A stretch of DNA of 64,000 bases from Hormiphora californensis (lineage: Eukaryota; Animalia; Ctenophora), in the NCBI GenBank assembly GCA_020137815.1, contig CM035357.1, positions 5,456,001 to 5,520,000 on the forward strand, read 5' to 3'. The position numbers were made by a program, and so were the translations under genes. This document shows, piece after piece, positions 15,901-21,900 of the stretch. Position 1 is the stretch's first letter. Every line of letters starts with the position of its first letter. The notes below the pieces were generated by a model. It had not been told where the DNA came from. It worked only from the letters and a program-made list of their open reading frames with translations, and did no database searches.

Positions 15901-18900
15901 TTCACGCTGTGGCTAAATGTGTACCAGCAGACGGATATAAAGTTATTACAAGCCCAAGAAACGGCCGGGCAACCTGTCCTGGTGGTTTCAGGCAGGTCGA
16001 GTGTGTTGCACATTCATTCTGGGCTAATGGTGGACCATTGCAACCGTTGAAATCCATGGAAAGATTAGGGAAGTTCGATGCCCGTGCACAGCTGAAGAAG
16101 GATAGCAAGCAGCCGTGCGAGGCGAGGTGTACCGACCACTACTGTACCGTGTCTGCAATTTGCGAGAGAGAATAATAAAAAAGTTGTTTCAAACTTTTCA
16201 ACACTACTTTAAACAAATTAATTTGAGGTTTCGTTTTTCCAATTCGCTAAGTTCTTTGGTATATATTCGGCTCTTTATACTTTTCTGTTTTGTCTTTTCT
16301 GGGTTTATCAGAGACTGGTAACAGTTTCTGTGTGAGAAAGACAAGGCCTAAGACAAGAGAAGACCGGATCTTACCCGGAGGATTGACACTAGTTGTCGTT
16401 AGGCGAGGCCTTGAATTTATCCTGCAGATCGTAGCTAGTGATGACATTGAAGGCAATCCCGCTAAAGTTATGGACGAGGAAAGATTTGGACACGTTTATG
16501 AAAGATAATCTACCTGTGGATATGGACCCAATCTTGCAAGGTAAAAAAGCTCCCCCAGCGGGTATCACTAAAGATATTCTATGGAATTTTGCTATTAACC
16601 TATTGAGAATGGTGGACAAGCAGCAGGAAGACCTTGTGAAGACCAAGTCAGAAGAAGGAGCAGTAGTGGGACAGGATAGGTCTGAACAGGTTCTCAAGGA
16701 GCTTGAGGCTATGCGGGAGTGTTTTGCAAACATACCAGACATGATACAGAAGGCGATAAACGGCAAGGAGAAGACTGATGATACTGGAAAGTTGCTCAAC
16801 CCCAGCCCTAAGAAGACACCACAGAAGCACACCCTCAAACTTGAGAAAGTTGGACTGGAAAAGTGGAAAGTTGTAAAGGCGAAGGTACGAAAGACTCTGC
16901 AGTCAATCCCAGTTGATGGAACCAGCTCGAATGAAGAGGATACCAATCTAGTTTTCAAGGACAAGTCTCAACGAGACAAAGCTGAAGAACTGCTGAAATC
17001 TGAATTTGATACTTCAACAGCCACTCTGACCACCAAGAAGCTCAATCCCAAAGTTACAATCTCAGACATTGCTGGAGAAATTACCACTGCCGAGGAAGTG
17101 TACAGTGAAATACTGAGGAAAAATGAGGAAATCAAAGAGCAGGTTGAAAGTCACCAAGAGGAACTGAAAGTCATTTTTCTTCATAAGGAGGATCGATATG
17201 CAGTTGTCCAGATGTCAAAAAAGATACGGGAGATTGTTCGCAAAAGGAATGACAGGATTAACCTTGATTTTCAAATCCACATTGTGAAGGATCGATTCCA
17301 TATCGTTCAATGTTTCAAGTGTCAACGCTATGGTCACAAATCAGACTCAGTGATGTGCCCCAGGAGAGACAGCGGTGATCCAGTTTGTACCTACTGTGCT
17401 GGAAATCATCGGTTCAAGGATTGTCAAGTGAAGAAGGATAGAAAAGTTGACTCCAGATGCTGTGCAAACTGCAAGAGTAGCCGAAGCAAGATCGATCAGC
17501 TCAATGCCACCACCCACACAGCGAACAGTTTCCAATGTCCCTTCTTTATCATGGAGAAGGAGAGATTGATGAGTAGAACAGCCGGAGCTGAGATGTTAAA
17601 AAACGAGTACAGTCGGAAGGCACGAGACTTCTTGGAAAGAAGGAGAACTCACTAAGAGTTGGAACATTGAACTGCAACTCCCTTGTCAATAAGACTGCTG
17701 GTGTACTGGAACACCTTGAGGACCAGCTTGTTGATATCTGTCTTCTTCAAGAGACCTACCTGAGGAAAGGTGACAATGCTAAACATCATGAGATAAAGGA
17801 AAGAGGATGGGAAATCCACTCGGCACCGAGGAAGCAGAGGATTGGTGGTGGAGTAGCAGTGGTATACAGAGCGGACCTGGGTGTTAAATCTGGACATACC
17901 AAGTGTTTCAAGACCTTTGAGTGTAAGAACGTGGATGATTGAAAACAGACTGATGGTCAATGAGGATAAAACTGAGTTTCTTATCCTGGGAAAGAAGAAG
18001 AAGATGGATATTGTACGTGAGGAGAGCGACCTGGCTCTTGAGCTAAATGGGAACATCATTTCCCCCATGGACATGGCTGGAAAATCGGGAAAGACCCTTG
18101 GTGTCTATCTTGATGAACAAATGGATATGAAACGTCAAATCTCCATGGTCAAAAGGAATGCTGGAGTTACTATGAGGAACCTCTGGCAGATCCGCCGATT
18201 CATTGATAAACCTCTACGTCTGATGCTTGCCTCCCAGCTGGTCATATCCAAAGTGGACTATTGCAATGCCCTGTATTTCAACCTACCGGCCTCTACCATC
18301 AAGCCGCTGAAAGGACTAATGAATCAAGTAATAAGGTACATCCATGGAGTCAGAGAGAGGAAAGTTGATCTGGACCCCTTCTACCGTGATTCCCATATCC
18401 TTACGATTGAGAAGAGGATATTTTTCAAAATCTGTCTACTAGGGTACAAGATCTATTATGGAAGTGCCCCTCAGTACCTTCAGGATCTAGTGGAACATGA
18501 TGAAAATACTGCAGTGCAGAAGTCTACTCGTCAGAGCTGTAAAGTAGACCATTACAAGTTAAAGCTACTTTCTGGAAATGTGAAAGTGAGCAAACTGGAA
18601 AAAAGGAGAATATCCCAATATCTCCCCCATGTCTGGAACAACCTACCGGAGAACCTCAGAGACGCACCTTCAGAGGACTCCTTCCGTATTCGCCTGAAGA
18701 CCTACCTGTTCGATGCTACTGTTACCTTCTCTGAAAGACCTTATTTGGTTTCCGACATCAGTCTTTAATAATTTCTTTTCGGTTATTCATTAGTCCCCGT
18801 TCTCACACGGTCACCCCTGCTGCTGTCACATAATTCTTTATAATCTAAGATACTATTCAGTTTATCATTTTTGTTATTATTTTTTCTGATTATACTTGTC

Positions 18901-21900
18901 ACCCACAGTCACCAAGTGTTGAGAGTTAATAAAGTCTACTATATATGTCAGTTATAAGTCACCAGTATGAGTTACCATTTACGACCTTTTGTCAAGCATT
19001 ATGTCAAGATAGGATGAGAGAACCGCTATGAATGGCAATTGCTCTTCGAACCAATCGAGAGTACTTGTCTATTTAGTCGGTATATAAATCCATTTTGTTG
19101 TTGTTGTTGTTGTTATCGTGAATTTGATAAAACAATTTCCAACTAAATTATCATTGTCAAGTCTTATATTAATCTGTATAGATGATATCTCCTTCGACCT
19201 TCCAGCTGGGTCAAGAGGGAAGAAATGAAAATACGGTGGTTTATTAATCAGAACAGTTTCGATGTTTCAAAATCTGAAAAATCGGGAAAAAATAAGATAG
19301 AAGAAAAAAACACTTTAAAATGGCTTCTTTGATCTAGTTTTACCATTTAATATTGCACGGTTGGGCATCTTCTTACCGTATCTCCGTTTTCCATTATCTT
19401 TTTCTCACTACAAGCGACCGGGTAATAGTAGTGAATTAATAATTAAGGATGGAGACACACAGTGGCCTTTTTCATGGGAGTAGGTGGTCATTAAGGAAAA
19501 AAATTTTTGAACCTATCTGGTAGCTTTTTGGACGTATAATCCAATGCACCCCTCACTCATGCCTTAATTTTTTGAGGAAAGTGGTGTTTTTCCAAAAAGA
19601 AGGGCAATTGAAAAATTTTCGAAAATTTTTTTTGATCTTATCTGGTAGCTTTTTTGACGTAGAATCAAATGCACCCCTCACTCATGCCTTGATTTTTTGA
19701 GGAAAGTGGTGTTTTTTCAGTTTTTAGTCTTTTTAGGCTTCTTTGACAACCATACTTAAAATTTAGCTGGAGCAGGTGAAATGGGGATCCATAACAATTT
19801 AAATGTGGTTGATAGTAAGAAATCGAACAAATTTATATCTCATTCAAAAATTTTTTTTTCAAACTTCATCCAGGGCGTTTTTATGGTCAAAAAACGGAGA
19901 AAACTTGATTTTTCGACCATAATATACAATAGTATGTACGCACTTGAAACCTTTTTTATCTGAAAGGCCAGACAATTTCCTGTCTTTTGGTCTATAGGAC
20001 ATCGATGAGGTTCGATGAGGAGGCTGGGGAGAAAGCGTTAAAGAAGGCGTGTTTGTTTACTTAAAAAACGATCTTTCAAAAGTTTGAGACCTAACTAAAC
20101 ACGTTTTCCGACCTTATTTTACACGTAGAATCGATTGCCGATAGAATTGGGACTCTAATATTGAAGGATAACGGTGAAAATCACATATTATGAAGTTGTT
20201 AGACCATGAATTTCTCCCCAGCCTCCTCATCGAAACTCATCGATGTCCTATAGACCAAAAGATAGAAAATTGTCTGGCCTTTCAGATAAAAAAGGTTTCA
20301 AGTGCGTACTAATAGTACTTGATTTTTCGACCATAATATACAATAGTACTACTATTGTATATTATGGTCGAAAAATCAAGTTTTCTTCGTTTTTTGACCA
20401 TAAAAACGCCCTGGATGAAGTTTGAAAAAAAAATTTCGAATGAGATATAAATTTGTTCGATTTCTTACTATCAACCACATTTAAATTGTTATGGATCCCC
20501 ATTTCACTTGCTCCAGCTAAATTTTAAGTATGGTTGTCAAAGAAGCCTAAAAAGACTAAAAACTGAAAAAACACCACTTTCCTCAAAAAATCAAGGCATG
20601 AGTGAGGGGTGCATTTGATTCTACGTCAAAAAAGCTACCAGATAAGATCAAAAAAAATTTTCGAAAATTTTTCAATTACCCTTCTTTTTGGAAAAACACC
20701 ACTTTCCTCAAAAAATTAAGGCATGAGTGAGGGGTGCATTTGATTCTACGTCAAAAAAGCTACCAGATAAGTTCATAAAAAAATTTCGAAAAATTCTTAG
20801 TGACCACCAAAATAGTAGAGTCGATAACTACATCGACCTCTCTCAATTGTTCCAGTTTTTGTCACATCTGTTTGGAGCCTCGACACGACCTCTAAACAGG
20901 TGTTACTTTTTCACAAACTGTTTTCATCTTGGTGTAATCAGCAGTTGAAATGTTGCTGATCATAACAAAAACCTGACTAAATTTTTTCAACTTGGGGTAA
21001 AACCATGGGTGTCAAAAGTTAGCTCTAGGTCCCCTGAGTAACCATCCGGAGACTCTAAGAGATATTTCAAGCCGTTCTCCCGTGATCATTAATCCTGGTG
21101 GAGAAACAAATACAATGCGGACGTACGTGAGCGCTGGCAGGCTGTTTACATGTTATTGTATGTCTCTCACTCTCTCTGAAAAAACCGCACGTGCGGTTGC
21201 GCCGCGCGAGATAACTCTTTCTCAAGGGGGAGAAAAGAGAGAGACGCACATTAACGTTATACAGGGTGTCCCACTGTCTTTGCGTGACCTGAGATTTTGG
21301 GTCATGACCGGGCTCCATTAAACTAACCAAAACTCATCGAAAAATTGGTCAAAATGGTTCTAACAAAAACCAGTGTTCTAGAGAATTGTCTGGCGAACAT
21401 TTTAGTTGCAAGATTGACTTTCCAAGTCTTACCAATCGTCAGATATATCGTCGTAAAGTCAAAATTACGTGGTCATGAAATCTGACCGGGGTTCACGTTT
21501 TGAAAAATTCACAAATGCAAAGTTGCTCGGATCACATTGCATTCCTCATAAGAGTTGTAGGAAATTGTCAGGCGGTCATTTTGGTACCCGGGTTTTTATC
21601 CTAGCTCAATGTTTAGAGTGTCTTATGACTGTCAGAACTGGAATTTTCCCAAAAGTGCTCTCAGGTATCGCATTGCATTTTGCCCTGTTATGAAGCTCAT
21701 AGCTGCTTGAATAACATCTTAGTGCATGATAGGGTTGAGATAGACCACTTGCGTATCCTACACATTAACAGGGGCCTTGCCAAATCGTCATAACAACCCT
21801 GTCAAGTGTCTAGATGAAATTGAGACGATATGTGCTGATTATCATGGGATTACACACGACACCGAGCCACCTAATTAGGGGTTGTGAGCCGATACCAACT

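Follow-up and report, generated by a model that had tools for sequence, protein, structure and literature searches.

Why would a retrotransposon begin with the leader sequence of its host's messenger RNAs? The question is raised by a stretch of 64,000 nucleotides from the ctenophore Hormiphora californensis (GenBank assembly GCA_020137815.1, contig CM035357.1, positions 5,456,001 to 5,520,000 of the forward strand), hereafter called the window, in which positions are counted from its first letter. Here a copy of a long interspersed nuclear element (LINE) lies in the 3' untranslated region (UTR) of a host gene, and the first 42 nt of this copy are the spliced leader (SL) of the species. An earlier note on the window had explained this by the retrotransposition of an SL-capped RNA. 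The results presented below support an RNA template that started with the leader, very probably placed there by trans-splicing, and leave the evidence divided between renewal of the leader in each round and its inheritance as DNA.

The spliced leader as the 5' end of a LINE family

The 42-mer GTTTCAAACTTTTCAACACTACTTTAAACAAATTAATTTGAG, which starts with GTTTCAAAC and ends with AATTAATTTGAG, is located at positions 16186–16227 and occurs once in the window, with zero occurrences expected by chance. It is identical to nt 3–44 of the leader printed in the H. californensis genome paper (GAGTTTCAAAC...AATTAATTTGAG), which was found on 56% of Iso-Seq reads (PMC8527503), and matches the true SL RNA genes in their exon; of the 43-nt SL RNA, just the initial A is missing. 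Its identification as the ctenophore leader, made in the earlier note, was therefore correct. The sequence also bears out the described arrangement, with the 42-mer lying about 10 nt past the host stop codon and running directly into the LINE 5' UTR, and with the insertion ending in (GTT)n. The GTT target overlaps both the tail and the start of the 42-mer: GTT at 16183–16185 represents microhomology with the LINE tail as well as with the SL start, which makes the 5' junction ambiguous by 3 nt, and no target-site duplication (TSD) beyond this ambiguity is visible at the window insertion.

The genome (110.7 Mb, 45 contigs) was searched for the 5' UTR of this family, and 13 places were found, 12 of which start at UTR nt 1 with 98–100% identity. 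All 12 copies, distributed over 7 chromosome-scale contigs and surrounded by unrelated flanks, carry the leader, which joins the UTR at one and the same point (SL|GTTTCGTTTT); a 5'-truncated copy that begins at UTR nt 173 (L111) has no leader. The 5' ends of the family copies lie at the first base of the leader or a few nucleotides inside it. No full-length copy devoid of the leader was found in the genome, and no copy reaches upstream of it, so that the present source copies are themselves leader-headed. Stacked leaders, proposed in the earlier note as something to look for in such a census, were absent, the pattern of an SL end, 0–6 nt and an SL start having no matches in the whole genome.

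The full-length members are about 4.8 kb long, with 4,727 nt after the leader, and in at least two of them both open reading frames (ORFs) are open, ORF1 encoding 405 aa and ORF2 986 aa. The ORF2 product of the intact copy L085 comprises an apurinic/apyrimidinic endonuclease (APE) at about aa 2–213 (PF03372/PF14529) and a reverse transcriptase (RT) domain, RVT_1, at aa 512–729, which identifies it as an APE-type LINE. Relatives of ORF2 with 94%, 72% and 45% identity are present in other assemblies, and Mnemiopsis, which has a different SL, possesses homologous LINE families at about 45% ORF2 identity. With regard to a named clade (CR1, L2, Jockey, RTE, etc.), matches in Pfam and Atlas say "endonuclease-reverse transcriptase" only; the CCHC-bearing ORF1 and the microsatellite tail are only suggestive as clade pointers.

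The hallmarks of target-primed reverse transcription, namely 5' truncation, simple-repeat tails, short TSDs and unrelated flanks, are all present in the family. Searching with the 3' UTR gave 40 places versus 12 5' ends, an excess of 5'-truncated copies that is typical of LINEs. A (TGT/GTT)n tail terminates all 12 copies, and the flanks beyond it are unrelated. In L036 the TSD GTAGGA is located outside aaGA+GTTTC, and in L037 a TSD of about 14 nt accompanies a leader shortened by 8 nt. The 5' flanks of 7 of the 12 copies end in TGT, GTT, TTG or GTG; microhomology of the TGT/GTT type between the tail, the target and the GTTT start of the leader explains why most family copies are found without the first A of the leader.

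As the first 42 nt of the element, the leader came in with the inserted DNA and does not belong to the target. Since every full-length relative is SL-headed, the RNA copied into the genome starts with the host leader. It can be stated with high confidence that the template began with the SL, that reverse transcription proceeded to its 5' end, and that the SL had come from trans-splicing of LINE pre-RNA; taken as a whole, the explanation that SL-headed LINE RNA was copied back, its leader having been placed by trans-splicing, is very probable, and there is little evidence against its core claim. The LINE pre-RNA would have been trans-spliced at an acceptor just upstream of GTTTCGTT, bringing the SL to the head of the lineage, and the SL-headed template would have been reverse-transcribed to its 5' end from a primed target. 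From the earlier proposal of an SL-trans-spliced LINE RNA copied to its very 5' end, the beginning of the RNA with the SL (12 of 12 copies) stands, and the evidence is split as to whether the splicing was fresh or the template came from a leader-bearing master.

True SL RNA genes and dispersed leader copies

A total of "718 leader sequences" for the genome of H. californensis, along with 491 leader motifs in Mnemiopsis, has been reported (PMC8527503). We found true SL RNA genes at 16 loci genome-wide, at each of which GTAAGCTGAG, a hairpin GGCTCTCTTCGGAGGCC, and CUUCCUUUUGG with the Sm-like motif CUUUUGG come after the leader, and a shared conserved upstream region ending in ...CCATCAGCA comes before it. 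They include three head-to-head pairs (C5:6431256-6432091, C9:4528201-4528955, and C11:221776-222599), a single gene (C12:4023183-4023286), and a cluster containing a tandem array whose units recur about every 740 bp (C13:3181577-3195352; L071, L072, L112). A genome search with the SL intron returned the same 16 genes and no second class of SL genes, and no Rfam family matches the 16 genes. The SL genes read CA|GTTTC. AGUUUC is thus the probable start of the SL RNA, and the genome does not encode the additional 5' G that the published leader has.

The exact 38-nt core of the SL occurs 390 times in the genome, and the 42-mer with at most three mismatches 475 times, dispersed and on both strands. 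These approximately 400–500 leader copies are mostly heads of retroelements from more than 30 sequence groups. At the window site the SL is followed by GTTTCG and the LINE UTR and preceded by the host 3' UTR; as the earlier note maintained, the site is not an SL locus, having no SL-gene features, and the 16 true SL genes are located elsewhere.

Non-LTR elements (those without long terminal repeats) associated with SL sequences are known in nematodes and trypanosomatids, where NeSL-1, CRE1/2, SLACS and CZAR insert into SL genes via a restriction-like endonuclease, and by analogy the leader in the window could be the flank of such a target. However, the window family encodes an APE and not a restriction-like endonuclease, uses GTT-rich sites anywhere in the genome, and has the SL as the initial 42 nt of the element itself. 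The upstream flanks of its copies are unique and devoid of the SL gene upstream region, no SL intron follows the tail, the TSDs enclose the SL together with the LINE, and the window site itself is a host 3' UTR. For the window family, SL-gene-specific insertion is thus refuted, with practically no probability left to it.

Another alternative, raised in the earlier note, was that the SL followed by GT turns the 5' end of the element into a mimic of the leader donor. A GT does follow the SL in the window family (GTTTCG) and in 7 of 34 heads of other families, but it is not conserved across families: the related subfamilies L108 and L109 start with GA, and most families with CC, CT, TT, CA or similar dinucleotides. 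Moreover, GTTTCG is unlike the real donor GTAAGCTGAG (GTAAGC), which is accompanied by a hairpin and the Sm-like CUUUUGG, neither of which is found in the LINE, and in cDNA contigs no splice from 16227 was observed apart from one spurious 19-nt match. The donor mimic was therefore rejected as very improbable.

The junction in host mRNA and genomic reads

Contigs assembled from reads were compared with a 4,001-nt stretch around the insertion, the sources being cDNA (X1), DNA of the same individual (X3), a second individual (X5), and an organism designated B (X7). In one cDNA contig, 13408/9 is spliced to 15711 with the loss of a 2.3-kb intron (13409–15710), and the same contig passes the host stop codon into the leader, reaching 16213. 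A second contig covers 16204–17952 and a third 17923–18629, the latter spanning a deletion junction private to the window copy, both with no mismatches; at variant positions, the window copy is the only family copy visible in the cDNA contigs. The cDNA depth collapses past 19084, placing the end of the host mRNA at about 19085. The entry of spliced host cDNA into the SL and LINE, and the end of coverage at the LINE 3' end, indicate that a dead LINE copy now serves as the 3' UTR of a host mRNA.

Of the DNA contigs from the same individual, some cross the boundary between host 3' UTR and leader and others that between leader and LINE UTR. Two observations weigh against the proposed origin of the locus. 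The 42-mer being a high-copy repeat, no short-read contig bridges it with at least 31 nt on each side, and the SL–LINE junction consequently rests on the long-read assembly, on 12 independent loci, and on contigs with 24–27 nt in the SL. In addition, the empty site (aaaaaagttgtt|atcgtg) was not found, position 16185 being joined to 19115 in no contig of the same or the second individual.

The lack of bridging short-read DNA contigs, together with the existence of the SL–LINE junction in RNA, from which it could enter an assembly by cDNA contamination, could be taken as a sign of an artefact. Against this are the 12 loci, spread over 7 chromosome-scale contigs, which have unique flanks and the hallmarks of a LINE, the same-individual DNA contigs that enter the SL from the host 3' UTR and leave it into the LINE UTR, and the presence of the same junction in the run from organism B. 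An assembly or contamination artefact was rejected, its probability being negligible. The contig from organism B runs from inside the leader into the UTR of the window LINE with 96% identity, and the SL-headed family is therefore common to two species.

Two further features of these contigs were observed. In organism B, the LINE family is present with about 96% identity over 16201–18814, SL junction included, and the flanking host exons were not found at 90% identity or above; conservation between the species thus appears stronger for the element than for the host gene, a difference for which slow evolution of the element, missing coverage or horizontal transfer could be the explanation. In the second individual, a 186-nt contig matches 16100–16190 with 4 differences and then has a further 95 nt without any alignment to the compared stretch. 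This extension is unlike the leader, the LINE and the expected empty site, and may represent another allele at the insertion site.

Structure of the window copy

Apart from the deletion junction, to which no strand applies, all features of the locus described here are in the forward (+) orientation. The last coding exon of the host gene, which encodes a Cys-rich sequence, occupies 15711–16175 according to the ORF list and the cDNA contig, with a TAA stop codon at 16173–16175; a weak match to the PCSK9 C-terminal-like domain (Pfam PF18459, 29.6 bits) is below the Pfam cut-off. Ten nucleotides of host 3' UTR (16176–16185) separate it from the leader, which is followed by the 213-nt LINE 5' UTR at 16228–16440, beginning with GTTTCGTTTTTCC. 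ORF1 (16441–17655) is intact, with 404 codons and a stop, and its product contains three CCHC-type knuckles near the C-terminus and has no Pfam match. The N-terminal remnant of ORF2 (17667–17925, about 86 codons) encodes the start of the APE, as indicated by PF03372 and by alignment to L085.

The same alignment reveals an internal deletion at 17925|17926 (17923–17926) with GTA microhomology, in which 1,859 nt were lost, as calculated from the lengths of 2,868 nt here versus 4,727 nt in the intact copy; read contigs from other family copies part from the window sequence at 17923–17926. The deletion takes out the remainder of the APE and the RT core and shifts the ORF2 frame, so that the C-terminal remnant (17926–18768), known from the ORF list and from the alignment to L085, is out of frame with the N-terminal part and extends to the ORF2 stop. 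It is followed by the LINE 3' UTR at 18769–19096, which has 40 genomic matches, 24 of them full-length, with 96–100% identity, and by a (GTT)6 microsatellite tail at 19097–19114 that marks the end of the insertion, the next bases being ATCGTG. With its RT core deleted, the window copy is dead: 16186–19114 is an internally deleted, non-autonomous copy, 2.93 kb long, of a young APE-type LINE family.

Leader heads on other retroelements

The 72 leader loci that were fetched from the genome fall into 34 sequence groups downstream of the SL, most of them with an ORF starting 10–200 nt after it; among the encoded products are one RT and proteins resembling ORF1 that contain PHD or GDSL/2OG-oxygenase domains. 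Among 59 independent heads, the whole 42-mer is present in 40, and the others are short by 1–7 nt. An A immediately precedes GTTTC in 18 of the 34 heads from other families, compared to a background frequency of 0.30 (p=0.005). This base corresponds to the +1 A of the SL genes, which indicates that reverse transcription extended as far as the leader's first nucleotide.

A second SL-headed LINE superfamily, with an ORF1 product 33% identical to that of the window family (E 6e-64), was sampled by its UTR and not by the leader. Its 25 UTR matches all begin at UTR nt 1 or within 12 nt of it, and the leader was present in all 20 copies fetched. In the old, decayed copy L110 the leader has decayed too, as expected of inserted DNA. 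These counts also bear on the possibility that the LINE RT jumped from its own RNA to SL RNA, similarly to the formation of U6/L1 retrocopies. Template switching is a known property of LINE RTs, and SL RNA is a small and plentiful molecule; however, such switching would vary the junction and copy the whole SL RNA, whereas the observed junction lies exactly at the 3' end of the SL exon, never includes the SL intron, and involves the same LINE nucleotide in 12 of 12 and 20 of 20 copies. The template-switch chimera was accordingly rejected, with a probability even lower than that of the donor mimic.

Leader heads are also found on CRE-like copies in which the RT comes first. Three of them, L113 (C7:1670472-1670631), L114 (C1:5564140-5564299) and L116, are 100% identical over their first 374 nt, and the leader is whole in one, cut to 20 nt in another and cut to 13 nt in the third. 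It follows that 5' truncation can stop inside the leader and that short AATTAATTTGAG remnants elsewhere may be heads as well. Swapping of leaders, considered for L113 and L114, was dismissed, since the supposed "other leaders" proved to be unique flanks beside leaders truncated to 13 and 20 nt.

Several heads have a different continuation. In L001/L014, L002/L019, L007/L015, L009, L022 and L133 the leader passes straight into CUGAUGA-stem-GAAAC cores that are hammerhead-like and of Penelope type; such heads often abut an inverted second leader, and L007 is a long palindrome. An Rfam search of the SL|CUGAUGA..GAAAC heads gave no hammerhead at the gathering score or at E up to 1. A full-length metazoan signal recognition particle RNA gene (RF00017, 240 bits) is located at L022:1815-2110 (-), about 300 nt from an SL-headed element. 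Finally, three SL-headed LINE copies lie within 17 kb (L095–L097; G000 C5:7019164-7035941), one of them with a private C-to-T change in the leader; their identical upstream flanks point to segmental or tandem duplication of one insertion, not to three independent events.

Renewal or inheritance of the leader

Does each round of retrotransposition add the leader anew, or do the copies inherit it? The chance that the leader is renewed by trans-splicing in each round, and is not just inherited as DNA, appears to be about even. Among lineages whose UTRs are 60–96% identical, none of the 34 sites at SL nt 9–42 is variable, while 77 variable sites occur in the following 100 columns (p=7e-17 by Fisher's test, with the window family counted). 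Of about 540 heads genome-wide, about 478 agree with the leader without a mismatch over 35 nt. The identity of the SL across more than 30 unrelated families fits fresh addition and is difficult to obtain through selection on every position. An excess of A-to-G changes in the heads is small once a variant lineage is set aside, with 524 purine-tolerant versus 498 pyrimidine-tolerant matches.

This variant lineage is defined by the leader GTTTCA(A/G)GCTTTTCGGCAC..., which is present at 20 loci. The variant loci mostly, and all copies with both G15 and G16, belong to one LINE superfamily (L117–L132, L134, L137–L139; for example at G000 C6:2052488, C2:7458903 and C9:1916385) in which ORF1 encodes a 2OG-Fe(II) oxygenase (AlkB-like) and a GDSL esterase.

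The variant provides the first of several points against renewal. In copies selected by their UTRs it is present on 10 of 10 members of family A and 4 of 4 of family B (UTRs 91–100% identical) and on 3 of 3 of family C, none of which has the standard leader, and the variant is not the exon of any SL gene; such binding of a leader to a lineage looks like DNA inheritance of the head. Furthermore, 3' splice sites have the form YAG, and a G at position -3 makes a poor acceptor. The SL ends with GAG, which weighs against re-splicing onto a DNA-encoded leader. RNA contigs also show unprocessed read-through from the host sequence into the SL. The suggestion of the earlier note that the family has no promoter of its own and uses host trans-splicing instead is plausible, with one concrete counter-indication.

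On the other hand, the variant could possibly be an RNA-level signature on a fresh SL, caused by editing or by misreading of modified adenosines by the RT. Its changes are all A-to-G, at SL nt 7, 8, 15 and 16, and in two young copies an A is back at precisely one of these positions, at nt 7 in L120 and nt 16 in L134. A sequence complementary over 11 bp to leader nt 9–19 is located at +125 in family A (two copies, z -2.3 to -2.6) and in family C (z -1.2), and no such complement to leader nt 9–19 was found in family B.

The alternative is that each lineage captured the SL once and that transcription has since been initiated at the first base of the leader, later trans-splicing being unneeded; the SL exon may then act as a portable start site or promoter element, a role that it plays in the SL RNA genes of Ascaris. 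Besides the stability of the A-to-G variant across families A, B and C without a matching SL gene, this possibility is favoured by the SL at the head of all full-length copies with no SL-less master, by the lack of stacked leaders, and by the poor GAG acceptor. It would, however, require near-absolute purifying selection on about 35 positions in more than 30 unrelated families, and yet the variant lineage tolerates 3–4 changes. The uniformly A-to-G changes and the reappearance of A in L120 and L134 fit an RNA-level signature better than random mutation, and the conserved upstream region of the SL genes is absent from the LINE copies. We therefore regard an inherited head with internal initiation as unlikely, although it has to be taken seriously.

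We tentatively give somewhat more weight, at slightly less than an even chance, to the broader form of the renewal reading: many unrelated retroelement families (LINEs of several kinds, CRE-like and Penelope-like elements) would have given up an element-encoded 5' end, their read-through or otherwise initiated pre-RNA being SL trans-spliced in each round, with the A-to-G changes as an RNA-level signature. The pre-RNA would be trans-spliced at the end of the DNA-encoded leader, and the head would be refilled from the host pool of SL RNA. If this is true, a capped template of full length can arise from every insertion that lies within a transcription unit of the host.

Relation to known systems and significance

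The completeness of LINE 5' ends without an upstream promoter is a classic problem, for which internal promoters and 5' ribozymes, such as that of R2, are the known answers. L1Tc has both the Pr77 internal promoter and a ribozyme resembling that of hepatitis delta virus, and its transcripts are unspliced (PMC1874656, PMC3185411). The elements described here resemble L1Tc and R2 in having a LINE RNA with a defined 5' end that is portable or promoter-independent, often derived from a host co-transcript, but in those systems the promoters or ribozymes are encoded by the element, whereas here the host leader forms the 5' end.

Retrogenes of dinoflagellates carry DNA-encoded relics of the leader DinoSL (PMC6050394, PMC5585692, PMC11453091). 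As in our case, SL-capped RNA was reverse-transcribed, so that a leader in the genome marks retrocopies; however, those are recycled host genes with stacked truncated relics, while here autonomous retroelements carry a single leader at a fixed junction. In Hydra, the SL was found on about 30% of Iso-Seq reads from transposable elements (PMC12220107), and thus host SL trans-splicing acts on their RNA in another early-branching animal, but at the RNA level only, with no report of a leader fixed at LINE DNA 5' ends or invariant across lineages. In the literature searched, no account was found of LINE families whose DNA copies start with a spliced leader, and a paper on Penelope retrocopies of Adineta makes no mention of an SL. 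The present case combines a strategy for the LINE 5' end with SL-tagged retrocopies.

These results have consequences for annotation. Of the 718 counted "leader loci", only 16 loci are SL RNA genes, the rest being mostly heads of retrocopies, and this affects the mapping of first exons in Iso-Seq data. The leader is a built-in tag for full-length retrocopies, and at the window locus a host gene has adopted a LINE as its 3' UTR. The host SL as the constant first 42–43 nt of whole LINE families would represent a third strategy for the LINE 5' end and would tie the success of retroelements to the trans-splicing machinery of the host in one of the earliest-branching animal phyla.

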